Both the position numbers and the translations under genes were made by a program. This document shows, piece after piece, positions 5,992-61,697 of a DNA stretch of 64,000 nt. Numbering within the stretch: position 1 is the first letter of the stretch; each line of letters begins with the position of its first letter. The stretch covers positions 186,001 through 250,000 of the IMG/VR virus record IMGVR_UViG_3300036853_000446. One strand, 5' to 3'. The notes under the pieces were generated by a model. That model ran no database searches. It had not been told where the DNA came from and worked only from the letters and a program-made list of their open reading frames with translations.

Positions 5992-6099
5992 CAAACGCCT
6001 TATTGTAACACAAAACGGAGTGCAACGCCGCTTCCCGATCGCAACCTCGAAAACTATCGTAGCTCGTAACTTTCGCAACTATTCAGTAACGGCTTGGCA

Positions 6100-6606
6100 A
6101 TGACCATCCAGTACGTCGTGGGGGACGCGACCCGTCCGCAGGGGCCCGGACCCAAAGTTCTCGTCCACTGCGTGAACGACATCGGCAAGTTTGGCGCGGG
6201 TTTCGCTCTGGCCATCAACTCCCGCTGGTCTCGAGTTGCGGAGTCGTATCGGGAGTGGCATCGGACCGGTAGCTCTCCCCTGGTCCTGGGTTTGACGCCG
6301 AGCGCCGAGCCGACAACGGCCTTTCACCTTGGGGCCGTTCAATTCGTCGAGGTCGAACCGAGCCTCTGGGTCGCCAACCTCATCGGGCAGCACAAGACCA
6401 TCAGCGACGGCGAGAAGGTGCCGGTCCGCTACGAGGCACTGGAGATGGGCCTTCAGACGGTCGCGGTATTCTGTGACCGCCAGCAGGCCTCCGTCCACGC
6501 GCCGCGGCTCGGGGCGGGGCTCGCCGGAGGGCGTTGGGACAGGATCGAAGCCCTTCTGAAGCGCACGCTGCGAGGACGATCGGTGACGATTTACACGCTG
6601 CCCTGA
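6100..6606 (+). CDS. Macrodomain (Appr-1-p / ADP-ribose processing, TARG1/Poa1-like)
   Basis: YVVGDAT, VHCVNDIGKFGAGFA, APRLGAGLAGGRW. Confidence 0.9.
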   Translation: MTIQYVVGDATRPQGPGPKVLVHCVNDIGKFGAGFALAINSRWSRVAESYREWHRTGSSPLVLGLTPSAEPTTAFHLGAVQFVEVEPSLWVANLIGQHKTISDGEKVPVRYEALEMGLQTVAVFCDRQQASVHAPRLGAGLAGGRWDRIEALLKRTLRGRSVTIYTLP

Positions 6607-13437: not shown

Positions 13438-13990
13438 GCACCTCGTCCTCGCCTTTGACCAAAGCCCTCATGGCCTGGACGTACCAGATACCGTCGATAC
13501 TCTCGTTCGAGATCTCGCGCAGCTGGTCTTCGGACTCGAGGACACCCCACCACGACTCGTAGCCGTAGACGACGCGCCACAAGCTCGGGATCCAGAGGGC
13601 GGGATTCTGCATCGAAAGGCTGAAGCTCAACACGCCCGACTCCGGATCGTAAGAGCACCCCACGGTGCGTGCGACGTCACCGAGATACAATCCGAGGTAC
13701 GTCTTGCCTCCAAAATCCTCACCACACGGACGAACCCGAACGAGCCGATTCACCTTCCGACTTCGACCGGGGGCGACGAGTTCTCCGTCGATATGAACGC
13801 CCGTGACGCTCACGGGATACTTGAATGGTTTGACCAAATCCGGCTCTGCCAGCAGCCTCGATAGAGAGTCCTCGCAGATCTTCTCGGCATCCGGAGCCAT
13901 GAGGCTTTCGGCGTAGATCGCTCGGCGCCTCTCCTCGAGTTGTTCGATCTGCTCGTCGATGCTCGCGAGTTCGTCTTTCAAGGTCGACAT
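13424..13990 (-). CDS. Conserved phage hypothetical protein
   Basis: VRVRPC..KTYLGLYLGD..NPALWIP..VYGYESWW. Confidence 0.7.
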   Translation of the reverse strand: MSTLKDELASIDEQIEQLEERRRAIYAESLMAPDAEKICEDSLSRLLAEPDLVKPFKYPVSVTGVHIDGELVAPGRSRKVNRLVRVRPCGEDFGGKTYLGLYLGDVARTVGCSYDPESGVLSFSLSMQNPALWIPSLWRVVYGYESWWGVLESEDQLREISNESIDGIWYVQAMRALVKGEDEVHAQG

Positions 13991-14069
13991 TTGGGTTCTC
14001 CACCATGGCGCGAATCAGGGACCGACTCTCTTTGGATTTGCACTCACGGTGTACTTCAAAGCAGATATT

Positions 14070-14957
14070 GTGGCGAGTCACATTTATTCGGTTGTGGCCA
14101 TCGTTACCGACGATGAGGGCCGTTACCTCGTCGTTTCGCGAAAGGGCGACCACGACGACCTCGGTTGGCCTGGTGGAAAGGTAAACCCGGGCGAAACCGC
14201 AGAACTGGCGATCATCCGCGAGTTGTTCGAAGAGACCGGGCTCCTCGTTTCTCAACGGTTTCTTCGTTCGACCTTCATCGCGGCCGATCAAGAGGGACGC
14301 CTCTGTATGGCGTTCGACATCCTGCAGTACAAGGGCGTCGCTTACTCGAGGAAAGGCGCGTGGGTTGGCTGGGTCAAAGCCGCGAGACTCGTTACCGAAC
14401 GAAATGCGTTTAGAGATTACAACATTGCCGTCTTCAATCAAAAAGGGATCGCCTTCGACGGACCCCCGGAACCTCCCCCGCCCCCTGAACCCTCCGTCGA
14501 AGAAAAGCTCCTCGAGCTGACGGGAACACGAGGGTTTCCACAACGTCACATCACCTTCTTGCACGGGCCGTCGGCTCTGTCGTTTTGCCCCGTGGTGAGC
14601 ATTCCCCAGCCGCGGCTGACCTTCGACCGCAAGTGTTTCGTCGGCCTCTCGAACGAGCCCGTTCTCGGGATACGGGCGCACCTCCAGAAGTCGCTGATCC
14701 CTCTCAACCTGCTTCGCTACATGCACAGCCTCGGGGATCGCTGCATCGCGGCCGTCGTGGCCGTTTGTCCGCATCGGCCCCCCGCCGATTGGGAAGCGGT
14801 GTCGTCGAACATCATCGAGTGCCAGCCCCTTCAGATCGAGGTGAAGCTGACGTTGACAAAGAATCGGGCAGCCACCACCCCCATCGGATCGTCCGTGATC
14901 GTCTCGAGGCCTGCGCGCTCCGAGACGACCACGTCATTTCACCAACCGTTGCCGTAG
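14070..14957 (+). CDS. Nudix hydrolase with C-terminal extension
   Basis: Nudix box PGGKVNPGETAELAIIRELFEETGL. Confidence 0.85.
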   Translation: MASHIYSVVAIVTDDEGRYLVVSRKGDHDDLGWPGGKVNPGETAELAIIRELFEETGLLVSQRFLRSTFIAADQEGRLCMAFDILQYKGVAYSRKGAWVGWVKAARLVTERNAFRDYNIAVFNQKGIAFDGPPEPPPPPEPSVEEKLLELTGTRGFPQRHITFLHGPSALSFCPVVSIPQPRLTFDRKCFVGLSNEPVLGIRAHLQKSLIPLNLLRYMHSLGDRCIAAVVAVCPHRPPADWEAVSSNIIECQPLQIEVKLTLTKNRAATTPIGSSVIVSRPARSETTTSFHQPLP

Positions 14958-16333
14958 TCGACCGTCAAGCTATTCCTTCGTGCCCACTCGATGATGACGC
15001 GATCCTCCTGCGGCTTCGTCCGCCGGTTATGGGCGCCGCGCGCCTGCACGATCGCTTTCGTCTTGTTATTGACCTCGAGCGTGATGAGCTTTTCCGAGGG
15101 CGTAAACTCGTCAGAGACCGAAAGGCTCCAGATCGACTTTTCTTTAGCCTCGATCTCCGATCGATACGAGTAGACGCAGTGATGCAGCGCCTTGCCTTCG
15201 GCGCGCAAATCTTCGGACGAGACAATTTCCTGGATCGTCCACACTACGACGTTGGCGAACCCGCGCTTGGCGAGCTTACCGTCTTCCTTCTCGACGCGGT
15301 AACTCCGAAACCCCGACCGTTCAAATTTGACGGACGGTCGATCGTCCACCTGCCAGGGGAAGCGGCGACCTCCTCCGGCCTGGTTCAGCTCTCGATGCCA
15401 TTCGTTCATCGCGCGCGTGAGCGCCGCCACCGTTCGGCCCTGCATCGAGAATGCGGGATTTTCCCTGAACCTCCGGAAGACGAAATCGCAGACGGGCGCG
15501 ATCTGCTCACGACTGAACATCGGATTGCGCGCGAAGAAGCGCAGCACACTGAGTCGGAATTCCTCCTCCGTAGCGGTGCCGATCATCTTGTTTCTCTCCA
15601 AGTTTCGCCAGACGCTGAACAATTGGTTGTCACCGCCTTCGGCTTTGACCTGCACGCGGCGCAGCGCGGAGACGATGCCAAACTCCGCCGGTGTCTCAAT
15701 AAACTCGAGGCACTGCGCCCGGGTGAGAGCCAACGGCAACCTTCCGCTCTTGCAGTATTGAAAGAGAGAGCCGCCACCAGCGACATGCACGACGAGCGGC
15801 ATGAGGAGCGCGGCATTCTGATCGTTTTCCGCGAATGCCGACCAGAGGAAGCGCGGCGTCGGATACTTCGCCAACAAGTGCTCGCAAAGACTGCGGAACA
15901 CGCTGCCGCGACCCTTGCCCTGTGGCTTCCAAGTCGCCAAGGGCCGAAGATGCTCGACCCTGGCGAGCCGACACAACGTGTCACGCTCCGAAGGCAAGAC
16001 GAGCTTTCGTCCCGCCGCCGGTCCCTCGAGTAGCTGGCGAATGAAGGAGCGAGGTCCGGGATCGAGACGCGCGATCACCCTGTCTTTCCAGAGCGTCCCT
16101 TGGTTCGCGAGTACCTGGAGAGCTGCCTCCGCGAGTTTGGTTTTCTTATCGTTTTCTACACGCTCGACTTCGCGAGCGTGTTGCTGCTGGCCCTCCGCAC
16201 GTGCACGGAAGGCCTCACGCTGACGCCTCTTCATTACTCGACCGCCCACTGGAAGCGCCGAAACGCCTTCCAGTTCTTCTGGAGGTTGCGGGAACGTCGA
16301 GAGTCCATGCACCGACGGCGATGCGTCAGGCAT
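14939..16333 (-). CDS. PcfJ-like protein
   Basis: LRAEGKALHHCVYSY..LITLEV..IVQARGAHNR. Confidence 0.85.
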   Translation of the reverse strand: MPDASPSVHGLSTFPQPPEELEGVSALPVGGRVMKRRQREAFRARAEGQQQHAREVERVENDKKTKLAEAALQVLANQGTLWKDRVIARLDPGPRSFIRQLLEGPAAGRKLVLPSERDTLCRLARVEHLRPLATWKPQGKGRGSVFRSLCEHLLAKYPTPRFLWSAFAENDQNAALLMPLVVHVAGGGSLFQYCKSGRLPLALTRAQCLEFIETPAEFGIVSALRRVQVKAEGGDNQLFSVWRNLERNKMIGTATEEEFRLSVLRFFARNPMFSREQIAPVCDFVFRRFRENPAFSMQGRTVAALTRAMNEWHRELNQAGGGRRFPWQVDDRPSVKFERSGFRSYRVEKEDGKLAKRGFANVVVWTIQEIVSSEDLRAEGKALHHCVYSYRSEIEAKEKSIWSLSVSDEFTPSEKLITLEVNNKTKAIVQARGAHNRRTKPQEDRVIIEWARRNSLTVDYGNGW

Positions 16334-16663
16334 CGGTCGCAGAGCCGCAGAACCCCGTCTTTTCGCAAGCGGAGTGCGCGGTATCGAAGTGCAGAGGAAA
16401 GCGGCCAACCACCAGGGTTGTGCCGTTCCTCATTCTCCAGCGACGATGCTGGATCGTCCGCTGCGCTCGAGGCGCAGCAACGCATGGACCCGAAAGTTGA
16501 CTTCGAGTTGTGGGGGAAGAGACGCATTCACTAGGCTCCTGTTCAGGATATCACTAGTGACCGGTCTCCTTTTTCGTCTGTGAGTTCAGCAGCATGACAG
16601 CGCCGGTGAGCATGACGCCGCCCCGAACGATGTCAAGTCGAGTCGCCGGTGTAGAGCCTTGGC

Positions 16664-19522: not shown

Positions 19523-19708
19523 TCAATCCGAGCTGTCCGGTGGCCCGTCGTCCTCTATGCTCACCGAGCCCGTCAAGAATGAGTGCTCGACTGAAGCCTC
19601 GCATTTTTCGCAGACATAGGTGATCGAGGTGACCCGCGGGACGTCGAGCTTGACCTCGTGTCCACACTTCGGGCAAACGAGTTGAGCGGGCCGCAACGAG
19701 TCGCTCAC
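19523..19708 (-). CDS. Zn-ribbon protein
   Basis: CPKCG..CEKC. Confidence 0.6.
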   Translation of the reverse strand: MSDSLRPAQLVCPKCGHEVKLDVPRVTSITYVCEKCEASVEHSFLTGSVSIEDDGPPDSSD

Positions 19709-20856
19709 AGAATGGCCTCGAGCATCGCAACCTGGTCGTCCGGCAAGAGGTCCTCGCAGTAATATGCGATCATCTCGGCGAAGTTCTCTTCGGGAGTCGT
19801 TGCGGCGTACGGCGAAACGAAGACGCTGGTTTCCGGATGCTTCTGCCCAATGAAGGCACCGAGATCCATATGCGCGCCGCGGCTGGGGTCAGCCTCCCGC
19901 GCCAGCTCTACGACGGGGCTCTTTCCCTTGTAGCTCACGCCCTTGACGACGTAGGTAACACCGTTCTCCGTGATGGTTTCGCCCCCACTAGGCCATTTGC
20001 TTCGATCCTTCAGCAGGTCGAGGTCTGCCCTCTGCTTCTTATGCGCCAACTGGCTATAAAGGCCGTGGATCTCGCTATTCTTGCTCTGAAGGAACTTCTT
20101 GTGGAGGCGATGACCCAGTTCGTGCGTCACGCTCAGCACTGCCGGTCCCTGCTTGCCCTTCAGGTTGGCCCGGATGTAGAGGGTGTCGTCGCTTGGCCGG
20201 TAGAAGGCCAGCACGCGCGTCGATCTGCCCACCGAGTTGGTAACCTGGATGCTACCGTAGCAGATACGGGCGAGTCCCTTGCTATGCAGCAGCTTGACGG
20301 ATTTCTCGACAACTTTGGCGACGTCTGCCATCGCCGCAGGAGCGAAGCCGCCGGTATTGATCAGCTGGAAGGGTCCCGCCTCGAGGACCGTGTCTCCGCC
20401 CTCTTCAGAGTGTTTGCTCCCACTCGTCAAAACGCGACGGACGGTCGCCGCGAAAAGTCTATATTCATCGAGCGTCTTGATGAAGACCTCGACCGCCTTG
20501 TCCTCCTTGATGCGGTTGACCTTTGATTTGGCAAATGTCTTGGCGGCACGCTCGACAATCTTGCGATCCTTCGGAACCATCGCGTACTCGCGAAGAACGT
20601 CCAAGAACATTTCGTAAGCGCCATGCCTCCGCATGTAGTCGAACACACCTTGAATGACGGCCCCAAGTCTGAGGCGGTCGTACACGTCCTTGGGATCCCG
20701 GGCCCTCTCTTCGTGCTTCGCTAAGCCTTCGACAAAGGCTTCGAACTGACGGAGAAGCTGCAGCGTATCGCCCGCCACTTTGTGGCGGCGGTCATAGTCA
20801 TAGACGGGCTGACGACGTTCATAGCTCCAAGGCACCACGTCCAAGGCCGCTGACAA
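19705..20856 (-). CDS. Leader-bearing zincin metallopeptidase
   Basis: WSYERR..YDYDRRHKVAG leader; THELGHRLH and SPYAATTPEENFAEM. Confidence 0.8.
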   Translation of the reverse strand: MSAALDVVPWSYERRQPVYDYDRRHKVAGDTLQLLRQFEAFVEGLAKHEERARDPKDVYDRLRLGAVIQGVFDYMRRHGAYEMFLDVLREYAMVPKDRKIVERAAKTFAKSKVNRIKEDKAVEVFIKTLDEYRLFAATVRRVLTSGSKHSEEGGDTVLEAGPFQLINTGGFAPAAMADVAKVVEKSVKLLHSKGLARICYGSIQVTNSVGRSTRVLAFYRPSDDTLYIRANLKGKQGPAVLSVTHELGHRLHKKFLQSKNSEIHGLYSQLAHKKQRADLDLLKDRSKWPSGGETITENGVTYVVKGVSYKGKSPVVELAREADPSRGAHMDLGAFIGQKHPETSVFVSPYAATTPEENFAEMIAYYCEDLLPDDQVAMLEAIL

Positions 20857-23741: not shown

Positions 23742-24623
23742 ATGATGAAGGATTATGCAATCCAGCGCCCGGGCAAAGAACAGAAGGGGCGATCGTTCCG
23801 AGCCACCTGTGTTGCCGTTGCGACGGCCAACAGCCTTTGGGATGAGGGGGGCAAGGATGGCGCGATCCGGCCCGTCTGGGCGATGTTTGCGGGGACCGAA
23901 CAAGAGCTGCGCCCATTTGTGGCCAACCTCAAATCGGGGCGTAAAGCCGAACCCGCCGAGCAATTTTGGAGGGGCGGCGACAATGAGCGCTTCGAGTTTC
24001 TGCGCTCCGTCGGATTCGTCGCGTCCTGGCAGCGGGAAGCCGAGGGCTCCCTCGTGACGCTGTTTCATCCGGAACTCTTTCGACTCGATCCGGGGCTCAT
24101 CGAACCCTCCACTATTCGTTTCCTCCTGTTCGTTCCATCGGATTGGTCGGACGCGCAGCGGGTCGACGTCGCTAGTGCCGTTCGACACGTGCAACCGTTG
24201 GCGCCAAAGCTCGAGGAAGGTTACCTTTCCAGTCTGGTCCCGACGGCCTACCTCTTTGCTGCCTATCTCGACCGGCGCACGCGCGCGCCTCTGGTGGCCG
24301 ACGGCCGCTTCTACCTGCAGCTACTCCTGTCGGCTCTCGACCAGGGGCTCGCGTCTCTCCCGGGGAGAGACATCAAATACAACCGTTCCTCCCGTGACCA
24401 GTGGGGATTTCACAATGGTCACGGCTTCGATTTCGAGATGGGTGGCTCGAGCTGGAGTCCGCTCGGAATCGACTCCATCGGGCTCGCGCACGTGATCTCT
24501 TTCAACTCGACGCACACCGTTTTCGAACAGTTCCTCGCCGAGCAAGTGACCCAATATTTCGCCCGCGTGAAGGGCAAGACGCGGCGCGGGAAGATTGACC
24601 TTTCCGCCTTTGCCGCCGGTTGA
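23742..24623 (+). CDS. Hypothetical protein upstream of the MTase-helicase
   Basis: 293 aa ORF divergent from rtcB. Confidence 0.7.
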   Translation: MMKDYAIQRPGKEQKGRSFRATCVAVATANSLWDEGGKDGAIRPVWAMFAGTEQELRPFVANLKSGRKAEPAEQFWRGGDNERFEFLRSVGFVASWQREAEGSLVTLFHPELFRLDPGLIEPSTIRFLLFVPSDWSDAQRVDVASAVRHVQPLAPKLEEGYLSSLVPTAYLFAAYLDRRTRAPLVADGRFYLQLLLSALDQGLASLPGRDIKYNRSSRDQWGFHNGHGFDFEMGGSSWSPLGIDSIGLAHVISFNSTHTVFEQFLAEQVTQYFARVKGKTRRGKIDLSAFAAG

Positions 24624-24663
24624 TTCCGGATCAAATCCCAACTCTGACCCGTACTACTTTCAA

Positions 24664-27600
24664 ATGGCGAGACCAGAATCGATCGCGGTGGGAGGATTTT
24701 TTCCGACCCCCTCACATCTCATCCCCCTGATCGCTCGACACCTTTCGGTGGGCGATGGGGGCCGCATCTACTACGCCGACCCGTGCGCGGGCGACGGCGC
24801 TGCCATCTACGGCTTACATGAGGCGATGGGTAGTTCCGCGGAGGTCTTCTCGTGCGAGATGGAGGCCGAGCGCCATACGGGTCTCCTGGCTCGCGCCAAC
24901 CTCGACGGTTACAATGCGGCGCAGCGGACGTTGCACGGCGACGCCTTCCGGATCGAGATGTCCGCGGCCATCGGCTGCCTGCTCCTGAATCCCCCCTACG
25001 ACCTCGACTCGGTGCACGGTCGGCTCGAGCAGCGCTTTCTGGAGCGCTTCACGACCGCGCTTTGTGACGGCGGCGTGGTCGTCTTCATCGTTCCCCACTA
25101 TGCGCTCGCGGCATCGGCCAAGACTCTCGCGACCACGTTCGACAACGTCGAATGCTTCCGCTTCCCGAAAGAGGATTTCGCGGCCTTCAAGCAGGTCGTC
25201 GTGTTCGCGTCGAAAACCAAACCGCGACTGTCGCCTGACGCGCTCATCTTGGCGCGAGTCAACGGCTGGGCCAAGACTGTCGCCCGGTGCCCGATCCTGG
25301 GCTCGAAAGAAGACACGCACGAGCTTCACGGCACACACAGCACGCTGACCTGGCAGCTGCGCGAATTTGACCTGAAGGGCCTCATCAGCAAGGCTCGCCC
25401 GTGGCGCGAGTCCCGGTCCAAAGGGGTGGCCGGTGTCCTCACGGTGGTCCCCCACATCCTGCCCGAGATCCCGGTCGAAGACCTGCTGTTCCGTACCTAT
25501 CGGGTTGCAACGGCACCCCGCCCGGCGCACATCGCCGCCGGTATCGCGAGCGGCCTCTTCAACGGACGCGAAGTCTCGAGCGCGACGCCGGGCATGCCGA
25601 ACCTGCTCGTCAAGGGCGTGTTCACTCGCGAGTACGTCACGATCCAGGAGAACGTCAACAGCAAGGGCGAAATCACGGGCGTCACGCAAGTACAGCAACC
25701 CAAGCTCGAAACGACCGTGCTCGACCTTTCGACGAAACGCTACTCGCTGCTCAAACCCGCGGGTTCGGCGACGACATCCGGGATCGACGGGATGGGTATC
25801 GAGGGCCTGCTCGAGCACTACGGGCCGAGCCTCATGAACGTGATGGCGGAGCAGTGCCCGGTCACCTACGACCCGAAGCGCGACGCGACCGGGCTCAGGC
25901 TGGCTCCTGTCGGCCGCCCCCTGTTCCGGGCTCACGAGCACGCAGCCAAGGCCCTGCTGATGTTGCTCGGGGGTCAGGACCTCACCCCGAGCGAACGCAA
26001 AGGCAAGGCCGCCATTCTTCTCGGCGAGATTGGATCGGGGAAGACGGCCACGGTGCTCGCCCTCGGTCAGACGATCGCCAAATGCATCCTGGTGCTCTGC
26101 CCGCCCCACCTACTCGACTCGTGGAAGAACGAGACGAGGGTCGTGCTGCCCGGTGCGGACGTGCGGATCCTGAGTGACCTGAACGACGTCGACGCCCTGG
26201 CCCGTGACCTGGAGCTGCCGAGCGATCGGACCGTCATCGCGGTCCTCTCTCGTGAGGACGGCAAGCTCGGCCACGGCATGGCGGCCGTCGAATACCTGGG
26301 CTGTTGTCCGAAATGCGGCGCGCCCCTGCCCGAAGGAGACCTCGCCAAGAAGCGCGCTCATTGCGACGCCAAGCCCCTGACCTTGGCAGACGACCTGGCA
26401 CGGGCGGCCTTCACGCTCGCTCTCCACGTGGCCCCTCAGGCCCCAGAGGACGGCAACGTCCGGGCCCTTCTCGCCGGGCGTCACCTCGGCCGGTATCTCG
26501 TGAGCCTCGAGGGCCAAAAGAAACGCGCCAAGTGGTCGGGGTTCGATCCCCATTGGGTCCTCACGACGATCGCCACCGTCGTCCAGCGCCTGACGAGCCG
26601 CTTCGATAAGGGCCACGCCGAGTTGCTCGGCGCGCTACTGATGGCCGACTACGACCCGGAGCAGATCGCCACTCTCGCCCGCAAATTCTCCGGCAGCACG
26701 AGCTACGAGCAGCAGGGCCTCGCGCGGGCCCTCACGTGTCTTCTCCCGTTCGGTGGCGAGCTACAAAACGAAGTCCAAAAAGAAACCTACGCGAGCAACG
26801 GCGGCTTCTCTCATTACAAATTCGCGTCGGACGCCGAAACTTTGCGGGAGAAGGGTTTGAGTACGACGATTGGAACGATCGCGCTCGGGGGCGGCCAACT
26901 CCGCCTCAACGACGCCGCGCACGGGTCGGCCAAACTCGCCCTTGGCATTCTGACCCAGCTCGCGGTTCTCGGAAGCTTTCCGCGGGCTAAAGAAGAGTGC
27001 GGCGAAGCACTGTACCAAGCCACCCCGCGGCCTCGTCGGTACCCACTGGCGAAATACATCGCGCGGCGACACCCGAACCTTTTCGACCTCCTCTTGATCG
27101 ACGAGGCCCATGAAAACCAGAACGCCGATTCGGCCCAAAGTAATAGTGCGCACCGTCTGACGGGGCTTGGAATCCCATTCGTGCTCATGACGGGCTCGCT
27201 CATGAACGGCTATGCCGAGTCACTCTTCACGAACATTTGGGCGGTCTCGCCTGACTTCCGCGACGAGTTTAGGCACGACGAAAAGCAGAGATTCAACGAG
27301 CGCTACGGCTACAGCAAACGGATCCTCACGGACAAGGACCGCGAGACCAAAAAAATTGTCTCGTTCGGCACCCAATCCGACCGAGTCGAGCGCGGCGCGA
27401 AGACCGCGGGCAAAGCTCCGGGCCTCCTACCTCTCTTTCTTTTCCGCCACCTGCTCGCGTACGCCGTCACCCTACATAAGGCCGACCTCGCGCTCGATCT
27501 TCCCAAGTGCGCGCACTTTCGACACGAAATCGAGCCGAACGCGACGCAGACCAAAAACTACAAGAGCCTGTTGCGTGCACTGAAGGCGCGGATCAGCCAG

Positions 27601-28359
27601 GACCGCTACTCGACGGAAGGCCTCGCGGGAAAGCTCTTCGGGGCGCTCGCCGAGCTGCCGAGCTACCTCGACCGAGCGACGGGCGACACCGGCAATCAAG
27701 ACGACGGTTCGTACGGGATCTATTACCCGAAAAACGATGGTGGCAAGCTGGTCGCCAAAGCCGAGCCAATGAGTGCCAAGACGATCCTGCCGAAAGAGCA
27801 GTGGATGCTCGACACGGTGCGGGCCGAAATTGCCGAGGGTCGCAACGTGATGGTGTTCTGCTGGCACGTGAACCTACTGCCGCGGCTCGCGCGTCTCTTG
27901 AAAGAGGCGTTGGGAATCGAGTTCCCGGTGCTGCACGCGGACAAGGTTCCGCCCCACAAGCGCGAGGCCTGGATCAACAAGAACGTTCGCGACGTTGGCG
28001 CGCGTGGCATGATCGCCAATCCCGTCGGGATTCAGACGGGTTTGAACAACCTCGTCTATTTCGCTACCGAGATCTGGATGGAGGACCCTGCGTCCAACCC
28101 GACGATCTTCCGTCAGGCCACGGGTCGCGTCGATCGCGTGGGTCAAAAGCTCGAGACCCGCATTCACACGCCGGTCTACGCCGGAACCCTTCAGGTTCAG
28201 CTGCATGACCTGCTGCTCCGAAAGGTGGCCGTCTCGACGGCGACCGACGGGCTCGACAACGAGAGCATGCTCCTGGCGGCCGGCGCCGCGGAGGACGCGA
28301 TGCTGACCGGGCTCTCCATCGGTCGCCAGCTGTGGGACATGATGATGGACGTGAACTGA
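24664..28359 (+). CDS. DNA methyltransferase-SF2 helicase fusion (DUF6094/SNF2-like)
   Basis: DPCAGDG and NPPY; GEIGSGKT, DEAH, MTGS, QATGRVDRVGQ. Confidence 0.9.
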   Translation: MARPESIAVGGFFPTPSHLIPLIARHLSVGDGGRIYYADPCAGDGAAIYGLHEAMGSSAEVFSCEMEAERHTGLLARANLDGYNAAQRTLHGDAFRIEMSAAIGCLLLNPPYDLDSVHGRLEQRFLERFTTALCDGGVVVFIVPHYALAASAKTLATTFDNVECFRFPKEDFAAFKQVVVFASKTKPRLSPDALILARVNGWAKTVARCPILGSKEDTHELHGTHSTLTWQLREFDLKGLISKARPWRESRSKGVAGVLTVVPHILPEIPVEDLLFRTYRVATAPRPAHIAAGIASGLFNGREVSSATPGMPNLLVKGVFTREYVTIQENVNSKGEITGVTQVQQPKLETTVLDLSTKRYSLLKPAGSATTSGIDGMGIEGLLEHYGPSLMNVMAEQCPVTYDPKRDATGLRLAPVGRPLFRAHEHAAKALLMLLGGQDLTPSERKGKAAILLGEIGSGKTATVLALGQTIAKCILVLCPPHLLDSWKNETRVVLPGADVRILSDLNDVDALARDLELPSDRTVIAVLSREDGKLGHGMAAVEYLGCCPKCGAPLPEGDLAKKRAHCDAKPLTLADDLARAAFTLALHVAPQAPEDGNVRALLAGRHLGRYLVSLEGQKKRAKWSGFDPHWVLTTIATVVQRLTSRFDKGHAELLGALLMADYDPEQIATLARKFSGSTSYEQQGLARALTCLLPFGGELQNEVQKETYASNGGFSHYKFASDAETLREKGLSTTIGTIALGGGQLRLNDAAHGSAKLALGILTQLAVLGSFPRAKEECGEALYQATPRPRRYPLAKYIARRHPNLFDLLLIDEAHENQNADSAQSNSAHRLTGLGIPFVLMTGSLMNGYAESLFTNIWAVSPDFRDEFRHDEKQRFNERYGYSKRILTDKDRETKKIVSFGTQSDRVERGAKTAGKAPGLLPLFLFRHLLAYAVTLHKADLALDLPKCAHFRHEIEPNATQTKNYKSLLRALKARISQDRYSTEGLAGKLFGALAELPSYLDRATGDTGNQDDGSYGIYYPKNDGGKLVAKAEPMSAKTILPKEQWMLDTVRAEIAEGRNVMVFCWHVNLLPRLARLLKEALGIEFPVLHADKVPPHKREAWINKNVRDVGARGMIANPVGIQTGLNNLVYFATEIWMEDPASNPTIFRQATGRVDRVGQKLETRIHTPVYAGTLQVQLHDLLLRKVAVSTATDGLDNESMLLAAGAAEDAMLTGLSIGRQLWDMMMDVN

Positions 28360-34365: not shown

Positions 34366-35238
34366 TTACTCCTCGAACATCAAGTGAATGGGCGGGCGTC
34401 GGTAGCGCTCGGCCTCGGGCACGGAAGAGACTCGATAGAGCCGCTCGGTGCGTGGTCCCTTCGTCCCGCCGCTCACTTTGAGCGTCGCCGGGGCACTCCA
34501 GATACAAGCACCAAGCGGGAAATCATACTCGGACACGAAGACGTCCGTGTGGCGCGACCACTCGGCGACACGAGCCCGAAAGGCGTCCTGATCGAAGGAT
34601 GGCACGCCATCATAGCCCGTCGTGCCGGCGTACGGCGGATCACAGTAGATGAGTGATTCGATCGGGCGCGGGGCGACGGCGAGAAAGTCGACGACGGCGA
34701 ACGTCATCGAACGATCCGTTGCTCGCCGATCCAGCATCCGGAGGGACGAAACCACGGCGTTCATGATTGTACCTCCGTGATGCGTCGCCGTCTTCGGTGA
34801 CGAGCGAGGGCCCGCGTAGCCGCCGAACCACTTGCCGCCGAAAGAGCAGCCGAAGCCGCAGAAGGCCTTCAGAGGGTCGCTGTCGGGCAGGACCTTGGCA
34901 GCGGTCCAGGTCTCCCTGCTGACGACGTCAGGGGGCTGCCAGCCGCCCTGCACGGCGGCGTAGAGGGAAATGAGGGCGGCGTTGACGTCCGTGGCGTAGA
35001 CGGGCCCATCCTCCTCGAGCGCCGCGGCCACCGACAGGCCCCCGCAGAAGGCGTCCCAAACCTCCTGCCCTGGCCGGCGGTAGTCGAGCATCACGGCCGC
35101 GAGCTGCTTGGCGACGAGCGTTTTGCCACCGAGGTACTGCATCTCGGAGCGAGGTACACCGTTCCTCAGGAATGACCGGTTTGAGGGCTGATCGTCAAAG
35201 GTGTCGCGAGCTGCCCGCGGCTTCAGGGTCAGAGGCAT
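34366..35238 (-). CDS. Dam/D12-class DNA adenine methyltransferase
   Basis: MQYLGGK, DAFCGGLSV, YCDPPY. Confidence 0.9.
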   Translation of the reverse strand: MPLTLKPRAARDTFDDQPSNRSFLRNGVPRSEMQYLGGKTLVAKQLAAVMLDYRRPGQEVWDAFCGGLSVAAALEEDGPVYATDVNAALISLYAAVQGGWQPPDVVSRETWTAAKVLPDSDPLKAFCGFGCSFGGKWFGGYAGPRSSPKTATHHGGTIMNAVVSSLRMLDRRATDRSMTFAVVDFLAVAPRPIESLIYCDPPYAGTTGYDGVPSFDQDAFRARVAEWSRHTDVFVSEYDFPLGACIWSAPATLKVSGGTKGPRTERLYRVSSVPEAERYRRPPIHLMFEE

Positions 35239-35345
35239 CGGGAAGAGATTACGCCCCTGAGCCACGGGAAAATGCCGTGGACTAAATTCCCGGCTTCGGG
35301 GAATCTGCGAAGGCCGTTCAGCGGAGGCGTAAAGGAGGGGGCACG

Positions 35346-36845: not shown

Positions 36846-37163
36846 ATGAGTTACTCGTACGATCGCACGGCCGCTCGCGGGACACAGGCTCTCGACTACC
36901 TCAACCTCCCGACCGCAGCCAGTAACGCCCTCTGGGCTCTCGATGAGAAGTTCATCGGGACCGAAAACTACATGGGCGTAGCGTACTTCTGGAGCCTCGA
37001 GTACAAGTGGTGGCTGCGCGATGCGTCGCCGAAGGTGCGCCGAGCGGTCCACGAAGCGTTCCGCAAGGCACGGCTGTCGCCCGAGGACGACAGCGCCGAG
37101 CACGCGGCAATCGTCGCGAAGTTCTTTCCGGACGCCAAGGTCTTTTATGACCGTGGTGTGTAG
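36846..37163 (+). CDS. Leader-bearing small protein
   Basis: MSYSYDRTAA leader. Confidence 0.7.
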   Translation: MSYSYDRTAARGTQALDYLNLPTAASNALWALDEKFIGTENYMGVAYFWSLEYKWWLRDASPKVRRAVHEAFRKARLSPEDDSAEHAAIVAKFFPDAKVFYDRGV

Positions 37164-39574: not shown

Positions 39575-39703
39575 ATGTGTGACCTCATCCAGGCACTCAA
39601 CGGGCTGACGTGGCCCGCCGCGTTTGCGATTGCCGTCATCGCGATTGCATGTGCGTTCATAGGCTATTCGTATTTTCGGAGCTTCTGGTTTCGGAGCTTC
39701 TGA
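39575..39703 (+). CDS. Small membrane protein (not in ORF track)
   Basis: MCDLIQALNGLTWPAAFAIAVIAIACAFIGYSYFRSFWFRSF. Confidence 0.5.
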   Translation: MCDLIQALNGLTWPAAFAIAVIAIACAFIGYSYFRSFWFRSF

Positions 39704-39741
39704 TGAACGTCAAAAAGAAGCCGCGGTGTACCTCCGTAGCC

Positions 39742-40086
39742 ATGATCTACGAATACTATGCGACGCTCGACCGGGTGGTGGACGGCGACACGGTCTGGTT
39801 GCACGTCGATTTGGGGTTCCGGTCGAGCCTCCGGGTCGACTTTCGCCTCTACGGCATCAACGCGCCGGAGATGGTTGGGGCGACCCGAACGGCCGCGATC
39901 GCGTCGAAGACGGAACTCGAGCGGCTCCTCGGGCTCGGACCCATCAGCATTACGACACATAAGGCGGACGCTACGGACAAATACGGGCGCTGGCTCGCCA
40001 CGATCTACGTGCACACGAAAACGGGCCCGGTGAGCGTGAACGACGCCCTCCTGAGCGGGAGTTTCGCCGTGAAGTATCCCGCTTGA
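39742..40086 (+). CDS. Thermonuclease (SNase-like)
   Basis: RVVDGDT, RLYGINAPE, DKYGRWLA. Confidence 0.9.
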   Translation: MIYEYYATLDRVVDGDTVWLHVDLGFRSSLRVDFRLYGINAPEMVGATRTAAIASKTELERLLGLGPISITTHKADATDKYGRWLATIYVHTKTGPVSVNDALLSGSFAVKYPA

Positions 40087-40530: not shown

Positions 40531-42165
40531 TCAGCGTTCGAAAACCGACGCGAACGACTCGAGCTGATCGCGCGTGATGTCGAACTCGAGGACGTAGTGG
40601 GCAAACGCTTCGGCGAAAGCCTCGTCGATGTTGGTTTTGCCGTAGGCGGAGACGGGAACGACGGGGGCGGGATTGTCGACGTAGGAACTGAGCCACTCGG
40701 GGCCGCCCTCGAGCCCCGATAGCTGCTCGTCGGCGACGGCGTTGAAGGCTTTGGCGGCGGCGTCGACCCAGGCGTGCGCCGCCGTGACGACGTCTATCGC
40801 GCCCTGATCGATTGCCGCGCGATCCTGACGGTCGATCGCCTTTCCGAGTTGGCGTTCCGCCTGGCCGAGTGGCAGGTCGTATTCGTTGTGGAGATCGATC
40901 GCCGGTCCGCTCAAAACCTTCGTGTCGTCGACGAGCGAGGTGAAGCGCCGGAGATCCTTCGTCAGACCCTCGAGCGCCGCAGCCATGGCGCGGAGGAGCC
41001 CGGCAGGGTTCGAGGAGGACTCGAGCTTGTCGATGAGGGGATGAAAGCGGTCGGCGAAGCGGTCGACCGCGTGGTGGCCGCTCGCAATGTCCCGGTTGGT
41101 GAAATGCATGACCTTCAAGTGCCGCGGGGCGCCCTCGGGTTGATGCACGGTGTGGACCTTGACGAGGGTCGAAAAGCGCCCGCGCTGCTCCTGGGACATG
41201 CTTTTGAACCAGTACCGGTGCCCTAACTCGTGGATGATCGCGTAGACGGCGCGCGCGCTCGGCTTCGTGTAGAGCCGGACCGTATCGGGGCCCATACGAT
41301 AGGCCCCACCGGCGCCTTTATCGCAGTCCCGACAGATGAAGAGGATGCCGTACCAGGCGGTCTTCAGGTGCTTCTGAGCGAGCGCGCGGTAGGCCTCGAG
41401 CACGTTCTTCATGTAGGGTTCGATGTCCTTTTCCGCCGTTGCGCTCTCGAAGACGACGCGGAGCCCGGCAACGTCAAAAGTAGTGAAGGGCTCCGGCGCC
41501 CACGCACGCGAGAGTGACTCGAAAATCGTGTCGACCCAACCGACGGGGCTCCAGGTCCCTTTGGCTTTGACGACGGCCTTCGGGGCCACGGCCTTGACTG
41601 TCGTCACGAGGTCACGGGGGGAATCGGTGGGCCTCGCCTTCTCGAGGACCTTCTCGGCGGCGCGCGTCACGACGTCGTCAGCGACCGAGTACGTCGTTTT
41701 AAAGAGATCGCCGACCGTCTTGACCGAGGTTTCAACACGATAGACGCAAGCCCAGCCGGCGGCGTGACGGAGCTGTTCGGCGACGCCCCTCGAGTCGGGG
41801 TCGAAAATGTAACGGTTGCGGAAGGACTCGAGGTTCCACCAGGGGATGAGCGAGAGGCGGAGGCTCCGCTTGGCTTCACGGACCGCCGGGGCGACGGCGT
41901 CCGCGTGAGTTGGAGCGACCTTGGCAAAATCGCGCTCAAAGTCGTCGAAGAACGCGGTCAAGGAGGCTTCGACCTTGCCACTCCAGAACTGGAGGCCGCC
42001 GTCGAGGGGCTCTTTCAGGATCGCCCGTAGCTCGCCGGCCTTGGCCTTGAACCATTTTGCCGGGATTGAGGCAGCGATCCGCGTTCGGCGGAGCGCGAGC
42101 CGGATGAAATACCGAAGAGCCACCTGCTCGGACGTGTGGACGATCGATCTCCGCGAGGTTCTCAT
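40531..42165 (-). CDS. Leader-bearing zincin metallopeptidase
   Basis: EQVALRYF..RIAA leader; IHELGHRYW and SAYGKTNIDEAFAEAF. Confidence 0.8.
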   Translation of the reverse strand: MRTSRRSIVHTSEQVALRYFIRLALRRTRIAASIPAKWFKAKAGELRAILKEPLDGGLQFWSGKVEASLTAFFDDFERDFAKVAPTHADAVAPAVREAKRSLRLSLIPWWNLESFRNRYIFDPDSRGVAEQLRHAAGWACVYRVETSVKTVGDLFKTTYSVADDVVTRAAEKVLEKARPTDSPRDLVTTVKAVAPKAVVKAKGTWSPVGWVDTIFESLSRAWAPEPFTTFDVAGLRVVFESATAEKDIEPYMKNVLEAYRALAQKHLKTAWYGILFICRDCDKGAGGAYRMGPDTVRLYTKPSARAVYAIIHELGHRYWFKSMSQEQRGRFSTLVKVHTVHQPEGAPRHLKVMHFTNRDIASGHHAVDRFADRFHPLIDKLESSSNPAGLLRAMAAALEGLTKDLRRFTSLVDDTKVLSGPAIDLHNEYDLPLGQAERQLGKAIDRQDRAAIDQGAIDVVTAAHAWVDAAAKAFNAVADEQLSGLEGGPEWLSSYVDNPAPVVPVSAYGKTNIDEAFAEAFAHYVLEFDITRDQLESFASVFER

Positions 42166-42712: not shown

Positions 42713-42913
42713 ATGAGAGTCCTGAAGCGGACCCCTGCCACCCTAATGAACGATGAGAATTCCGAGCTGAAGGTCAGCGGTGATCTCGGTCCCGAGTGGG
42801 AGGCTGAAATCCAGCGACGGGTTGCAAGGCTCGACGCTGGCCTAGCCGAACTCATCCCAGCCGAAGAAGTCTTCGAAGAGTTGGCCCAGAAATTTGGCTT
42901 TCGGCTTCGATAA
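42713..42913 (+). CDS. Orphan addiction-module antitoxin (TIGR02574-like)
   Basis: WEAEIQRRVARLDAG..IPAEEVFEEL. Confidence 0.7.
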   Translation: MRVLKRTPATLMNDENSELKVSGDLGPEWEAEIQRRVARLDAGLAELIPAEEVFEELAQKFGFRLR

Positions 42914-42949
42914 AGAGCGGTCCAGATTTTATTGTTCGTCAGCGAGAGT

Positions 42950-42982
42950 ATGTCTCTCGCACATCGGGTTGCTGCCCGTAGG
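42950..42982 (+). pseudogene. Leader stub MSLAHRVAARR colliding with the 3' end of the opposite-strand ART gene
   Basis: ATG at 42950 after TTTTATTG; frame runs antisense into 42985..43773 and stops at 43093. Confidence 0.5.
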
Positions 42983-42984
42983 AC

Positions 42985-43773
42985 TCAGGTCTTTGCTTTC
43001 AGGTCGACCTTGACCGACTCCCATGAGCCATCGTCCCAGTATTTGCACCATTCGATGAGCTGGACCCGCACGACCTCATGCTTGTTTAGGTAAAGCTCCC
43101 GCTCCTCTTCGTACTCGGGCAGTACCATGAACTGAGCCGGTATATAGTTGCGCCGCTGATCGTCGCGCCGAATCACGCCGCTCAGGATGATGGGCAGTTG
43201 ATTACCCTCAGGCGCATGCGAACCTCCGGCGTATGCCCGAAGCGTGGTGCGGTTGTCAGGGCTGGTCCAGCTTGCCCCCAACCCCTGTCGCGTGATGACC
43301 TTCCAGATGGCAGCCCCGAGGGCGCTCGGCTTGTCTCGTAACTCGGCGAGATTCGGAACCTCGATGCGCATACCCCGGGCGATGGCTCGGGGCGTCGGCT
43401 GACAGACATGAGCCCCCGAGACCCAATCGTCCTTTTCGATGAGCCCATTGATGCTCGGAGCATCGGACACGAAGAAAAGCTTCAGCCGGGGATCTTCATC
43501 GAGCGTCCAGGTGCGGCCACGAGGCGTCGACCTGATGACGAACTTCTTGTCACATTTTACGCATTTGGTGATCCACCCGGGGTCACTCTTGTTGACCTTC
43601 CACTGGATGAGGTCGTGACCACGGGCTTCCGCGTCCCCGTGCCACCGCTTGGCTAAGGCTTCGATGTCAGGAGACGGAAAGCCATTTCTCGGACCTTTGA
43701 AGCTCGCGATGACCAAGGCTCCTTGTCGGGTGCTCGAATAACGGGCGGCGACTCGGCGTGCAATGCGGCTCAC
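42985..43773 (-). CDS. Leader-bearing ADP-ribosyltransferase-like protein
   Basis: MSRIARRVAARY leader; IARG, GLGASWTS, YEEERE (R-S-E pattern). Confidence 0.6.
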   Translation of the reverse strand: MSRIARRVAARYSSTRQGALVIASFKGPRNGFPSPDIEALAKRWHGDAEARGHDLIQWKVNKSDPGWITKCVKCDKKFVIRSTPRGRTWTLDEDPRLKLFFVSDAPSINGLIEKDDWVSGAHVCQPTPRAIARGMRIEVPNLAELRDKPSALGAAIWKVITRQGLGASWTSPDNRTTLRAYAGGSHAPEGNQLPIILSGVIRRDDQRRNYIPAQFMVLPEYEEERELYLNKHEVVRVQLIEWCKYWDDGSWESVKVDLKAKT

Positions 43774-44025
43774 GACAAGGTCGTAGCAGCAAAGGATTCG
43801 CCTTCAATCGCGGACGCGGCTTTGCCAAAAATTGCCCGGGCAATAAATTTTGGAAATCGCACCCTTTCCGGCTGCTGGTGGACCACCTTCAAAGTCGACT
43901 ATAGGGAATTCGAGAGCGCTCGGGCGCCGATATTACGGAAAATGACGACGATTGGGTCATTTACGGACGCCGTGCAAGACGACTGAACCGTGGTGGTGGT
44001 AGGCCGGCGATTGAGGTTCCCCACG

Positions 44026-44355
44026 ATGAAGAAAACAAAGAAGGCCGCCAAGGCCACCGCCAAGCCGAAAGCGCAGCCCAAGGCCAAGGCGACGATCAAG
44101 GCCAAGGCCAAGGCCGTCTCGAAGAAGAGAAGGCCGGCAAAGGTCGCCAAGAAGCTTCCGGAGGTGCTTGTGAGGAGCCCTACGATGGGCCCCGTGAGGT
44201 TCTGGGCCCCTCCGGGGTCGAGGTCCGCGCACGTCCAAAACCTGTTTTCGCTCGCTGAGCTGCTGCACGACGAGAGCGAGGCGGATGAAGACGGCTTCAT
44301 CAAGGGCGCCGGGTTCGATCGCTATGGCGGGTTCGAAGGCGACGGCCTTTCATGA
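44026..44355 (+). CDS. Histone H1-like Lys/Ala-rich protein
   Basis: KKTKKAAKATAKPKAQPKAKATIKAKAK N-terminus, acidic C-terminus. Confidence 0.7.
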   Translation: MKKTKKAAKATAKPKAQPKAKATIKAKAKAVSKKRRPAKVAKKLPEVLVRSPTMGPVRFWAPPGSRSAHVQNLFSLAELLHDESEADEDGFIKGAGFDRYGGFEGDGLS

Positions 44356-59853: not shown

Positions 59854-60639
59854 TCAGACGAGCCGCTTCATCGCCTCGTATTTTTCGGGCGCGCGACGTT
59901 TCAGATCGGCGGGCTCCTCCACATAGGAGCGAAAGGTTTCGGCGAAATCTTCGATGTTCGGCCTAAACTCGGCGTAGTCGGAAATGAATGGCGGCTGTCC
60001 CCAGGGCGGTGCGAACAGGTCGACGTGGTGCTTCTCTTCGAGCGCATGTCCTAGCTCATGCGTGACAGTACTCACGAGAATAGAGACCGAGGGCGGCTTA
60101 CGGTCGTGCACCGATAGGCTCAGGACGCCGCCTAGGTCCCACGAGGCATCTTCGGTTCCCCGCGGTGGTTGCAAGTTGATCGTCCGGGCTTCCCCTTGGA
60201 AGATGGCCTTCGCAACCGGTTTGAGCTTCCCGAACGCTTTCTTCCACGCTTCGACGTACGCTCCCCCGTGTTCGAGCAATTCGAGGGACCCTCTGTACAC
60301 GACGTTCTTACCGGTTGCCGCCCGTAACGCGAGACAAGTCTCCTCGAACGATGCGGAGGGTTTCTTCCTCACCACACGCGCGGGTTTGACCGCATCGATC
60401 TTGTCCAAATCCTCGTCGAACACGCCGCGCGCTTGGAGCCAGGCCCGAAGCTCCGCCACTGGAAAGGGCAGCATACTCCCGATATCGAGTGCGCCACGCA
60501 GGCGCTTCAGCACAGAGAGACCGTTCGTGCTCCACTCCCGTACCTTCAATAACCGATCGACATATTCGATCGTGACCAGGGCGTCAGCGGCTCCTTCGAG
60601 GTATCGGGCAGCAACACGGAGGGCGAGGCGACGGTCCAC
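59854..60639 (-). CDS. Leader-bearing zincin metallopeptidase
   Basis: LALRVAARYLEGAA leader; THELGHALE and SDYAEFRPNIEDFAETF. Confidence 0.8.
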   Translation of the reverse strand: MDRRLALRVAARYLEGAADALVTIEYVDRLLKVREWSTNGLSVLKRLRGALDIGSMLPFPVAELRAWLQARGVFDEDLDKIDAVKPARVVRKKPSASFEETCLALRAATGKNVVYRGSLELLEHGGAYVEAWKKAFGKLKPVAKAIFQGEARTINLQPPRGTEDASWDLGGVLSLSVHDRKPPSVSILVSTVTHELGHALEEKHHVDLFAPPWGQPPFISDYAEFRPNIEDFAETFRSYVEEPADLKRRAPEKYEAMKRLV

Positions 60640-60949
60640 CTCCGACCGGAGCCCATGAATGAATTACCGTCGGGCAAGGCAGCAGCACCCCTGGTCGCCC
60701 CGTGGTGAGGCGTGGCCCTTCCCACGTCCCGAGCGACCTTCCACTAACCCGGGGCCCTCTCTAGCCCGTGCAGAGCCCGTCCTGTTGCAGACCGGCGGTC
60801 GTCCCTCGGATCAAACGTGCCGCGCCGCCCGTACTCTCGGTTGACTTTGAGCTTTCCTCAAGTCAGTTTAGGAGCGACAAGATGGCTCGCGTCATCCACT
60901 CCTGCTCCCCCAAAACCAATTCCCCTCGAACCGCGGTACACTCACCCAC

Positions 60950-61201
60950 ATGGCGCAATCCTCCAAAGCCTCGCTCCCGGTCGACCTTCTCGAGAAGGCT
61001 CTCGGTCTCTCTCCCGATGCGCGCTTGGCGCTGGCCACCGAGCTATTGGACAGCGTCGAAGGGTCCGACCCCGCTTGGGAGCAGGCTTGGAGTCGCGAAC
61101 TCGATCGCCGTGCCGCCGAGGCCGACGCTCATCCCGAGCAGGGAATTCCGTGGTCCGTGGCGCGCGCCCAACTCGAAGCCCTCGTCAGCCCGAAACCGTG
61201 A
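60950..61201 (+). CDS. Addiction-module antitoxin (TIGR02574-like); partner toxin truncated
   Basis: ALGLSPDARLALATELLDS..AWSRELDRR..IPWSV. Confidence 0.85.
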   Translation: MAQSSKASLPVDLLEKALGLSPDARLALATELLDSVEGSDPAWEQAWSRELDRRAAEADAHPEQGIPWSVARAQLEALVSPKP

Positions 61202-61271
61202 AGCCCATCGTTTGATGGCTTTGAGTAGGTCTCGGATAACGGGAACCTTCTTGTGCGTGGCCAATTTGAAG

Positions 61272-61697
61272 ATGGAGTACTCATACGACCGACGCATGCA
61301 CGCTGCAAACTCCGGCGACGACGCTGAAGACGACGCCGACAAGCTCACCGACTTGCAGGGGCTGATCGCGGACGCATTGACAGCGGCTCGAGCGACGGCG
61401 GATGAGCTGGACAAGAGCACAGATTCCGATGCTCTGGACGCACCGCTCAAGCTCGCGAAAGAGCTATGCAGTGACTTCAGCTCGGCGGAAACGTGCGAAA
61501 CAGTCGCCGACTATCTGGCCAATATTCGGGCTGCGAAAACCAATGTCGGGAAGCTCGAGGCTGCGCTGAAGTTGGCCAAGAAGAGCGCCAAACGAGAAGA
61601 CGACGCCGAAGCGCTCGAAGCGCTCGAGGATGCCAGCGACGAGCTGAAAACCGTAAAGCGCGAGCTGCATGACATCGAGGGCGAGATCGATGGCTAG
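61272..61697 (+). CDS. Leader-bearing acidic helical protein
   Basis: MEYSYDRRMHAA leader. Confidence 0.7.
   Translation: MEYSYDRRMHAANSGDDAEDDADKLTDLQGLIADALTAARATADELDKSTDSDALDAPLKLAKELCSDFSSAETCETVADYLANIRAAKTNVGKLEAALKLAKKSAKREDDAEALEALEDASDELKTVKRELHDIEGEIDG

Follow-up and report, generated by a model that had tools for sequence, protein, structure and literature searches.

A very divergent protein with a predicted ADP-ribosyltransferase fold and a recurrent terminal peptide in an uncultivated huge phage

The 262 aa protein encoded at positions 42985..43773 (minus strand) of the 64,000-nucleotide stretch of DNA analysed here (referred to as the window) contains a C-terminal domain which, judging from its predicted structure, very probably has the ADP-ribosyltransferase (ART) fold, and the protein is probably an active transferase. 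ART effectors are already known from phages; what is new in the present case is the sequence family and its architecture. Membership in a curated ART family is not supported by sequence, comparisons with both the Alt/VIP2 and the ART-PolyVal families having failed. Near its N-terminus the protein carries a short peptide, or tag, which is found at the ends of a number of other proteins of the same phage, and this tag is a more unusual feature than the ART itself.

The source record and the ART gene

The window comprises bases 186001-250000 of a linear IMG/VR virus record of 407,634 bp (G000), the completeness of which is estimated by CheckV to be 86%. The record encodes a major head protein (G000 84874-85752; phrog_2522, E 2.3e-51) and a head-maturation protease of 529 aa (G000 88287-89876; phrog_18299 and phrog_2774), with an acidic scaffold-like protein (G000 86520-88277, minus strand) located between the two. 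The source is an uncultivated huge phage and not a bacterial chromosome, and the window is an accessory region of this phage. A first reading of the window as a cargo region of a conjugative element (PcfJ, methylase-helicase, SNase) was ruled out by the virus record with its own head genes. The window encodes a 1254 aa DUF6094 methyltransferase and SNF2-helicase protein (24595..28359, plus strand), as well as PcfJ-like (14939..16408, minus strand), D12 methylase (34366..35265, minus strand), NUDIX (13959..14957, plus strand) and SNase-like (39610..40086, plus strand) proteins. Such domains form part of the repertoire of the "polyvalent proteins" of phages and conjugative elements (PMC5512222), and in the window they are mostly encoded as separate genes. 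In the regions 0-140 kb and 360-407 kb of the record nearly all genes, including those of the structural module at 76-96 kb, are on the minus strand, and between 140 and 360 kb the gene orientation is mixed; this layout suggests that temporal gene classes are split by strand. Small accessory genes surround the ART gene, which is separated from the head module by more than 130 kb.

The ORF at 42985..43773 is a real gene, with a GC3 of 0.71 that is like that of the remaining coding frames in the window. It begins with a GTG codon and encodes 262 aa plus a stop. The database gene call for this protein (P0002, 243 aa) begins at L20 and thus loses the leader; however, the same leader is present in P0003, a homologue with 70% identity, and in most of the remaining family members, which supports a GTG start at 43773. 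Convergent to the ART gene is an orphan ORF of 66 aa (42713..42913, plus strand) that matches Unstab_antitox (PF09720; E 4.8e-6), for which no recognisable toxin partner was found and which is absent beside the ART homologues. A hairpin with a 7-bp stem, at about 42943..42961, is present between the stop codons of these two genes and may be a bidirectional terminator. A scan for promoters and terminators around the ART gene gave results at the chance level. Divergent from the ART gene is an ORF of 121 aa (43990..44355, plus strand) with a long lysine/alanine/proline-rich, histone-H1-like stretch and no Pfam match, whose product, from its composition, may condense or bind DNA.

No usable match to the 262 aa protein was obtained with the Pfam, PHROG, NCBIfam, or PADLOC models. 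In exhaustive searches about 14 relatives of it were detected, all of them metagenomic: a word search yielded three family members, phmmer over 1.84 billion representatives nine, and a profile word search four more, adding only close members of the family. Several of the homologues (P0003-P0015) are encoded on contigs of 80-196 kb or on short fragments. A scan of IMG/VR for relatives of the ART found nothing outside the source record itself, and a metagenome scan found two short contigs. As delimited by these sequence searches, the ART family is real but rare, and specific to phages of this kind. In one homologue (P0007) the protein is fused to a C-terminal HD domain. Another (P0011) is read in one uninterrupted frame across an entire contig of 2.2 kb, where the ART module comes directly after a head-maturation-protease domain (phrog_18299, E 2.7e-13; phrog_2774, E 1.6e-33) and is itself succeeded by further sequence; the protease-ART fusion is known from this single contig.

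Predicted structure and active-site residues

The full-length protein was modelled by AlphaFold with a pLDDT of 82.3 and a pTM of 0.65, and the C-terminal domain by itself (residues 127-262) with values of 87.4 and 0.83, respectively. Three parts can be distinguished in the model. The leader (residues 1-21) has a pLDDT of 33, and the tag that it contains (residues 2-13; 43735..43770, minus strand; core RVAARY at 43738..43755) is disordered. It is followed by a globular domain (residues 24-125; 43399..43704, minus strand) with pLDDT of 80-96, in which the near-invariant residues H53, C71-x-x-C74, and C124 form a probable zinc site, as suggested by their conservation. This domain is a likely candidate for a target-recognition module, and its fold matches among 48,161 PDB representatives compared by VIA-align were weak (Z 4-4.8). 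The third part (residues 127-262; 42988..43395, minus strand) is the predicted ART-fold domain, as delimited by the domain-only model and VIA-align.

When the full model was compared by VIA-align with the same 48,161 PDB representatives, nearly all of the matches to residues 127-260 were ART-fold or ART-like proteins, as were all 50 of the matches listed for the domain-only model; this classification was made by PDB entry titles and, for a few untitled rows such as IcmQ, BC2332, and a CNFy domain, by the known affinity of the proteins concerned. The best match was TreX (Z 7.2/6.9, rmsd 2.8-2.9 across 98-99 residues, identity 11-12%), and further matches included EcPltA (Z 5.9), diphtheria toxin (5.8-6.0), pertussis S1 (5.6) and Scabin (5.5-5.6). 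LT, Tpt1/KptA, PARPs, Tne2, Arr, TreTu, exotoxin A, CARDS, pierisin and DarT1 were also among the matches, and so was an ejection protein of cyanophage A4. According to the tool's own warning, Z values below 8 may reflect a common arrangement, and the top value here, 7.2, is a middling one; because the individual scores are modest, the assignment of the ART fold rests on the uniformity of the match list, for which it is difficult to find another explanation. Foldseek gave no match in the PDB with either the full-length or the domain-only model. Matches in BFVD consisted of uncharacterised phage proteins and of mycobacteriophage proteins described as having a "ParB-like nuclease domain" (E 7e-5 to 3e-4), and structure matches in the ESM Atlas were to viral clusters, DUF3990, and a cluster containing ADPrib_exo_Tox. 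A feature search of the ESM Atlas gave no usable match, and a profile search of PDB sequences retrieved no ART, its results being just chance SH3-like matches with E of about 0.5.

A first-pass annotation of this DNA had proposed a virion-delivered ART from the presence of an R, an S-x-T/S, and an E-x-E motif, in this order, behind RVAARY. All four of these motifs are found on the minus strand, with RVAARY at residues 7-12, R133 within IARG, S168-W169-T170 within GLGASWTS, and E224-R225-E226 within YEEERE. However, an ordered triad of R, S-x-[ST], and E-x-E also turns up when this protein is shuffled (257 of 2000 shuffles), and the triad alone is thus weak evidence; it is conservation that lifts it above chance. 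In an alignment of 10 sequences, R133, G134, L145, G166, W169, T170, D205, Q206, E226, E233, R236, E241, W242, and W251 are invariant. Near-invariant in this alignment, besides the four residues of the probable zinc site, are P28, R29, E49, G52 and W58 in the N-terminal globular domain, and G164, N174, P194, R208, Y210, P212, E224, D247, K259 and K261 in the ART-fold domain. The motifs noted earlier are thus conserved at R133, T170, E226, and, in at least 90% of the rows, E224, but not at S168, where S, H, Y or A is found. Over sequences that are only 27-40% identical, the R/T/ExE set is invariant or nearly so, which points to a conserved catalytic centre.

The order of secondary structure elements in the model fits the plan of the R-S-E enzymes. 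A strand formed by residues 129-138 is followed by a helix, a short strand (168-170), a second helix and another strand (192-201), after which a long conserved loop containing D-Q-x-R-N-Y leads to a strand (226-228) that starts at E226. Within the first of these strands is R133 (43375..43377, minus strand), the proposed catalytic or NAD-binding arginine. S168-W169-T170 (43264..43272, minus strand) would correspond to the S-T-S motif of strand 2, and the modelled short strand with its subsequent helix has a geometry that fits this role. The DQRRNY sequence (43144..43161, minus strand) occupies the position of the ARTT loop before strand 5, and its conservation makes a part in substrate recognition likely. 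The ExE motif, E224-R225-E226 (43096..43104, minus strand), is placed at the start of strand 5. In the ranges aligned by VIA-align, R133 falls onto R9 of pertussis toxin, R7 of LT and R77 of Scabin, and E224/E226 are consistent with E110/E112 of LT. That R133, T170, and E224/E226 sit where the catalytic residues of an R-S-ExE enzyme belong is well supported by the model. The ART identity proposed by the first-pass annotation is likewise well supported, both by the structural matches of the model and by the conserved R/T/ExE residues at the expected positions, and the split beta-sheet of ARTs is present in the predicted structure (AlphaFold models, VIA-align Z up to 7.2). The comparison of an AlphaFold model with ART folds that this annotation had suggested supported the fold with VIA-align but not with Foldseek against the PDB.

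The terminal tag in the phage and its relatives

The RVAxRY tag is a short terminal peptide common to unrelated proteins of one phage. Its motif in G000 is roughly x-[IL]-[AS]-x-R-V-A-x-R-Y-[L], and about 14 ORFs carry it near the start, at a distance of 3-14 residues, and about five more near the stop, at a distance of 9-22 residues (~19 in all). A strict pattern gave eight N-terminal matches in the record compared to 0-3 (on average about 0.5) in 20 genomes with shuffled codons, and a PSSM of the tag gave 27 matches compared to 0-4 in the shuffles. The codons of the different copies differ synonymously, which indicates that selection has been on the peptide and not on the DNA. A k-mer search for a common motif upstream of the tagged genes gave nothing convincing. 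Within the mixed-orientation region (140-360 kb), all 14 of the 14 tagged genes are on the strand of the structural genes, the chance of which is about 6e-5.

The proteins tagged in G000 are mostly unrelated to each other. In addition to the ART, they comprise a topoisomerase IB, a GNAT acetyltransferase, HExxH zincin-like paralogues, a J-domain protein and several unknowns. The topoisomerase (272 aa; G000 356515-357333, minus strand; PF01028, E 9e-26) is tagged N-terminally, and its gene is part of a run of four consecutive tagged genes (G000 352924-357333). The J-domain protein is a borderline assignment (26.8 bits compared to a cut-off of 27.8 bits), and its closest paralogue is tagged too. 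A neighbour of the ART gene in the window encodes one of the tagged paralogues, an HExxH zincin-like protein of 544 aa (40531..42165, minus strand) with the same type of tag near its N-terminus, and a second tagged protein, of 261 aa, which has weak zincin-like matches and is likewise counted among these paralogues, is encoded at 59854..60639 (minus strand). The N-terminal region of the scaffold-like protein located beside the head protease loosely resembles the first half of the tag (R-I-A and R-R-V-A); this resemblance is below the PSSM threshold and may be a coincidence.

The tag is also present in most members of the ART family. In P0006 it is found at the C-terminus instead, in P0007 it lies between the two modules, and in P0011, where the ART module is fused to the protease, it is absent. 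In two loci of relatives (L001 and L014) tagged genes adjoin the ART homologue; a candidate relationship of the downstream gene in L001 to the 544 aa zincin was ruled out by BLASTP (E 3.1). Relatives of this zincin were detected in 36 IMG/VR contigs, mostly of huge phages (78-512 kb, GC 0.42-0.70), and many of them begin with the tag. In these 36 loci, which were gathered by means of the zincin, the tag was observed 28 times at the N-terminus of an ORF compared to 0.8 expected from codon shuffles, and six times at the C-terminus compared to 1.0 expected, whereas internal occurrences of the pattern (24 observed, 21 expected) were at the chance level.

Another start motif, M-x(0-2)-Y-[DS]-Y-D-R-[RT], follows the start codon of six ORFs in the record without a gap and is seen 0-1 times in each of ten shuffles. 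Three of its copies are in the window, at 20802 (ORF 19705..20856, minus strand), 36852 (ORF 36846..37163, plus strand), and 61278 (inside ORF 60768..61697, plus strand), and the other three are outside it, at G000 90180, 170466 and 179595. Among the ORFs that bear it are those of a Peptidase_Mx1-like zincin and an ART-PolyVal protein, and one of 118 aa immediately upstream of the head protease. In some copies the sequence runs on as D-R-R-V-A, and from this sequence similarity the motif may be a variant of the RVAxRY signal.

Proposed function, alternative explanations and known systems

The explanation that we favour, and which we consider reasonably likely as a whole, is that the protein is a three-part effector, consisting of a disordered tag at the N-terminus (~20 residues, with RVAxRY as its core), a small and probably zinc-binding domain, and a very divergent R-S-ExE ART domain, which is packaged by means of its tag. 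The enzyme would most likely mono-ADP-ribosylate a host macromolecule using NAD+, with the small N-terminal domain likely selecting the target, and this modification would redirect or disable a host process for the benefit of the phage. By analogy with other ExE enzymes the modified residue would presumably be an arginine of a host protein, a choice of target that we put forward tentatively. The tag would direct its carriers into the head during assembly, much like the capsid-targeting sequence (CTS) of T4, for whose internal proteins this precedent has been described (PMC3012670), and the carriers would then be injected with the DNA. At present, the tag is best interpreted in terms of virion delivery, in view of the protease fusion, the resemblance of the tagged enzymes to polyvalent proteins, the strand bias of their genes and the precedent of head-packaged ARTs, which are a known theme in phages (PMC5512222, PMC9503650); we give tag-mediated packaging a little less than an even chance. 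The ART gene has no MuF or portal fusion. More broadly, RVAxRY, and perhaps also the related Y-D-Y-D-R-R start motif, might be a portable address label, usable at either end of a protein, by which unrelated enzymes are loaded into capsids across an uncultivated clade of huge phages. We put the chance of this generalisation somewhat below even; the set loaded in this way would include this ART, two other ARTs, the topoisomerase IB, the acetyltransferase, J-domain proteins, and many zincins.

A somewhat unlikely alternative is that the enzyme is an active ART that is made de novo in the infected cell, like ModA and ModB of T4, and is not packaged, its tag being a degron, a DnaK-binding peptide, or a peptide for docking to a phage complex other than the capsid. 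The location of the gene, far from the head module and among small accessory genes, agrees with this, as does the occurrence of the tag at either terminus, which is also seen for degrons, and the basic-hydrophobic-basic character of the tag together with the tagged J-domain proteins would fit a link to chaperones. It is countered by the existence of a tagless protease-ART fusion, by the strand of the tagged genes, which is that of the structural genes, and by the tagged ART, GNAT, and zincin proteins, which correspond to the enzyme repertoire of packaged polyvalent proteins (PMC5512222). The structural matches include Scabin, pierisin, DarT1, and Tpt1/KptA, and the N-terminal domain has a CxxC knuckle and a weak match (Z 4.3) to the DNA-binding C-terminal domain of MotA; the ART could thus modify DNA or RNA, as Scabin, pierisin, DarT and the RNA-targeting Rhs ARTs do, with its zinc-binding domain serving as a nucleic-acid binder. 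We consider this unlikely, since all matches of the N-terminal domain are weak and the family has ExE and not QxE. Guanine-specific ARTs carry QxE. Additionally, the best structural match, TreX, is an ART that modifies protein arginines (PMC11606950). It is very unlikely that the domain has the ART fold but no transferase activity, i.e., that it is an NAD+ glycohydrolase which depletes NAD+ or a non-catalytic module, structural or binding NAD or ADP-ribose, such as IcmQ. The structural matches do include both IcmQ and Tne2, an NADase, and S168 is variable, but the full R/T/ExE set would then have been retained, invariant or nearly so, at 27-40% identity.

The first-pass annotation had also pointed to a macrodomain at 6100..6606 that could reverse the modification. 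The ORF concerned (6094..6606, plus strand) does encode a genuine macrodomain, of the BT1257/SCO6735 type (phmmer against the PDB, E 1.5e-39 to 6.7e-39; 2fg1, 5e3b, 2afc), but the link between it and the ART did not hold up. The two genes are 37 kb apart and on opposite strands, and no macrodomain was called near the ART homologues on the contigs of relatives. Macrodomains act on ADP-ribose that is linked to acidic residues, terminal, or on nucleic acids; arginine-linked ADP-ribose, the linkage that an ExE enzyme is expected to make, is not normally removed by them. In view of the distance, the strand, the lack of co-occurrence, and this mismatch of linkage, a functional pairing is not supported. 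The macrodomain ORF also has weak DarG-like matches and is without the tag, and no hydrolase of the ARH/DraG type was found in the genome. It is extremely improbable that the ART is the toxin of a phage-borne toxin-antitoxin or abortive module with either this macrodomain, as in DarT-DarG, or the ORF at 42713..42913 as its antitoxin. A match to Unstab_antitox does adjoin the ART gene and the macrodomain in the window is genuine; however, the ART and the macrodomain are not encoded together as in a DarT-DarG pair, the antitoxin-like ORF is convergent, not co-transcribed with the ART gene and missing beside its homologues, and PADLOC gave nothing for the ART.

Phage ARTs reprogramme the transcription, translation and division of the host, and they are tools for finding host targets that are vulnerable. 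As the present family is invisible to sequence annotation and was recognised only by its fold and its conserved residues, similar effectors of huge phages have probably been missed. If the tag is indeed a packaging signal, it would provide, for a large group of uncultivated phages, a list of the "injectome" that can be read from sequence, and it would be a candidate means of packing foreign proteins into large capsids, a use to which the T4 CTS is already put. The ART described here would, if the address label is real, be an injectome member from a new family that is recognisable at the fold level only.

Of the known systems, T4 Alt, a head-packaged and injected R-S-E ART of the Alt/VIP2 clade, resembles the present protein in being a phage ART with an R, S-T, ExE-type pattern; the gene likewise shares its strand with the late and structural genes, and an injected, host-modifying role is plausible. 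However, the protein described here is smaller (262 compared to 682 aa) and has a different N-terminal domain, and its gene is not beside structural genes. No relationship with Alt at the sequence level was detected by hhalign (probability 0.2), and PF03496 (Alt/VIP2) has no match to the ORF and is absent from the genome. TreX and Tre1, which are R-S-ExE toxins of T6SS Rhs proteins acting on an arginine of FtsZ (PDB 8s2m), share with it a compact ExE domain of ~130 residues and provide its top structural match. TreX is an R-S-ExE enzyme, and ExE is typical of ARTs that modify arginine (PMC11606950). They differ in being delivered by Rhs/T6SS and not by a phage, no immunity gene is seen at the phage ART, and the identity is 11-12%.

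The likeness to the ART-PolyVal proteins (PF18760) lies in the theme of effectors, such as ART, GNAT and zincin enzymes, that are delivered together with invading DNA, and, as in polyvalent proteins, relatives of the phage ART occur as fusions (protease-ART followed by further sequence, and ART-HD). In contrast to the PF18760 ARTs, whose active site is H-Y-D (PMC5512222), the phage ART has R, T and ExE without a match to PF18760, and the modules are encoded separately, every one of them tagged at an end. Two PF18760 ARTs are also encoded by the record (G000 142154-142672, plus strand, and 178804-179688, minus strand), both beginning with a motif of the Y-D-Y-D-R-R type; together with the ART described here, the phage therefore carries at least three ART-fold genes. 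Lastly, the tag resembles the T4 CTS in being a short terminal peptide that is common to otherwise unrelated proteins of one phage (PMC3012670), whereas its RVAxRY sequence is different, it sits at either terminus, and it is conserved across a clade of huge phages.
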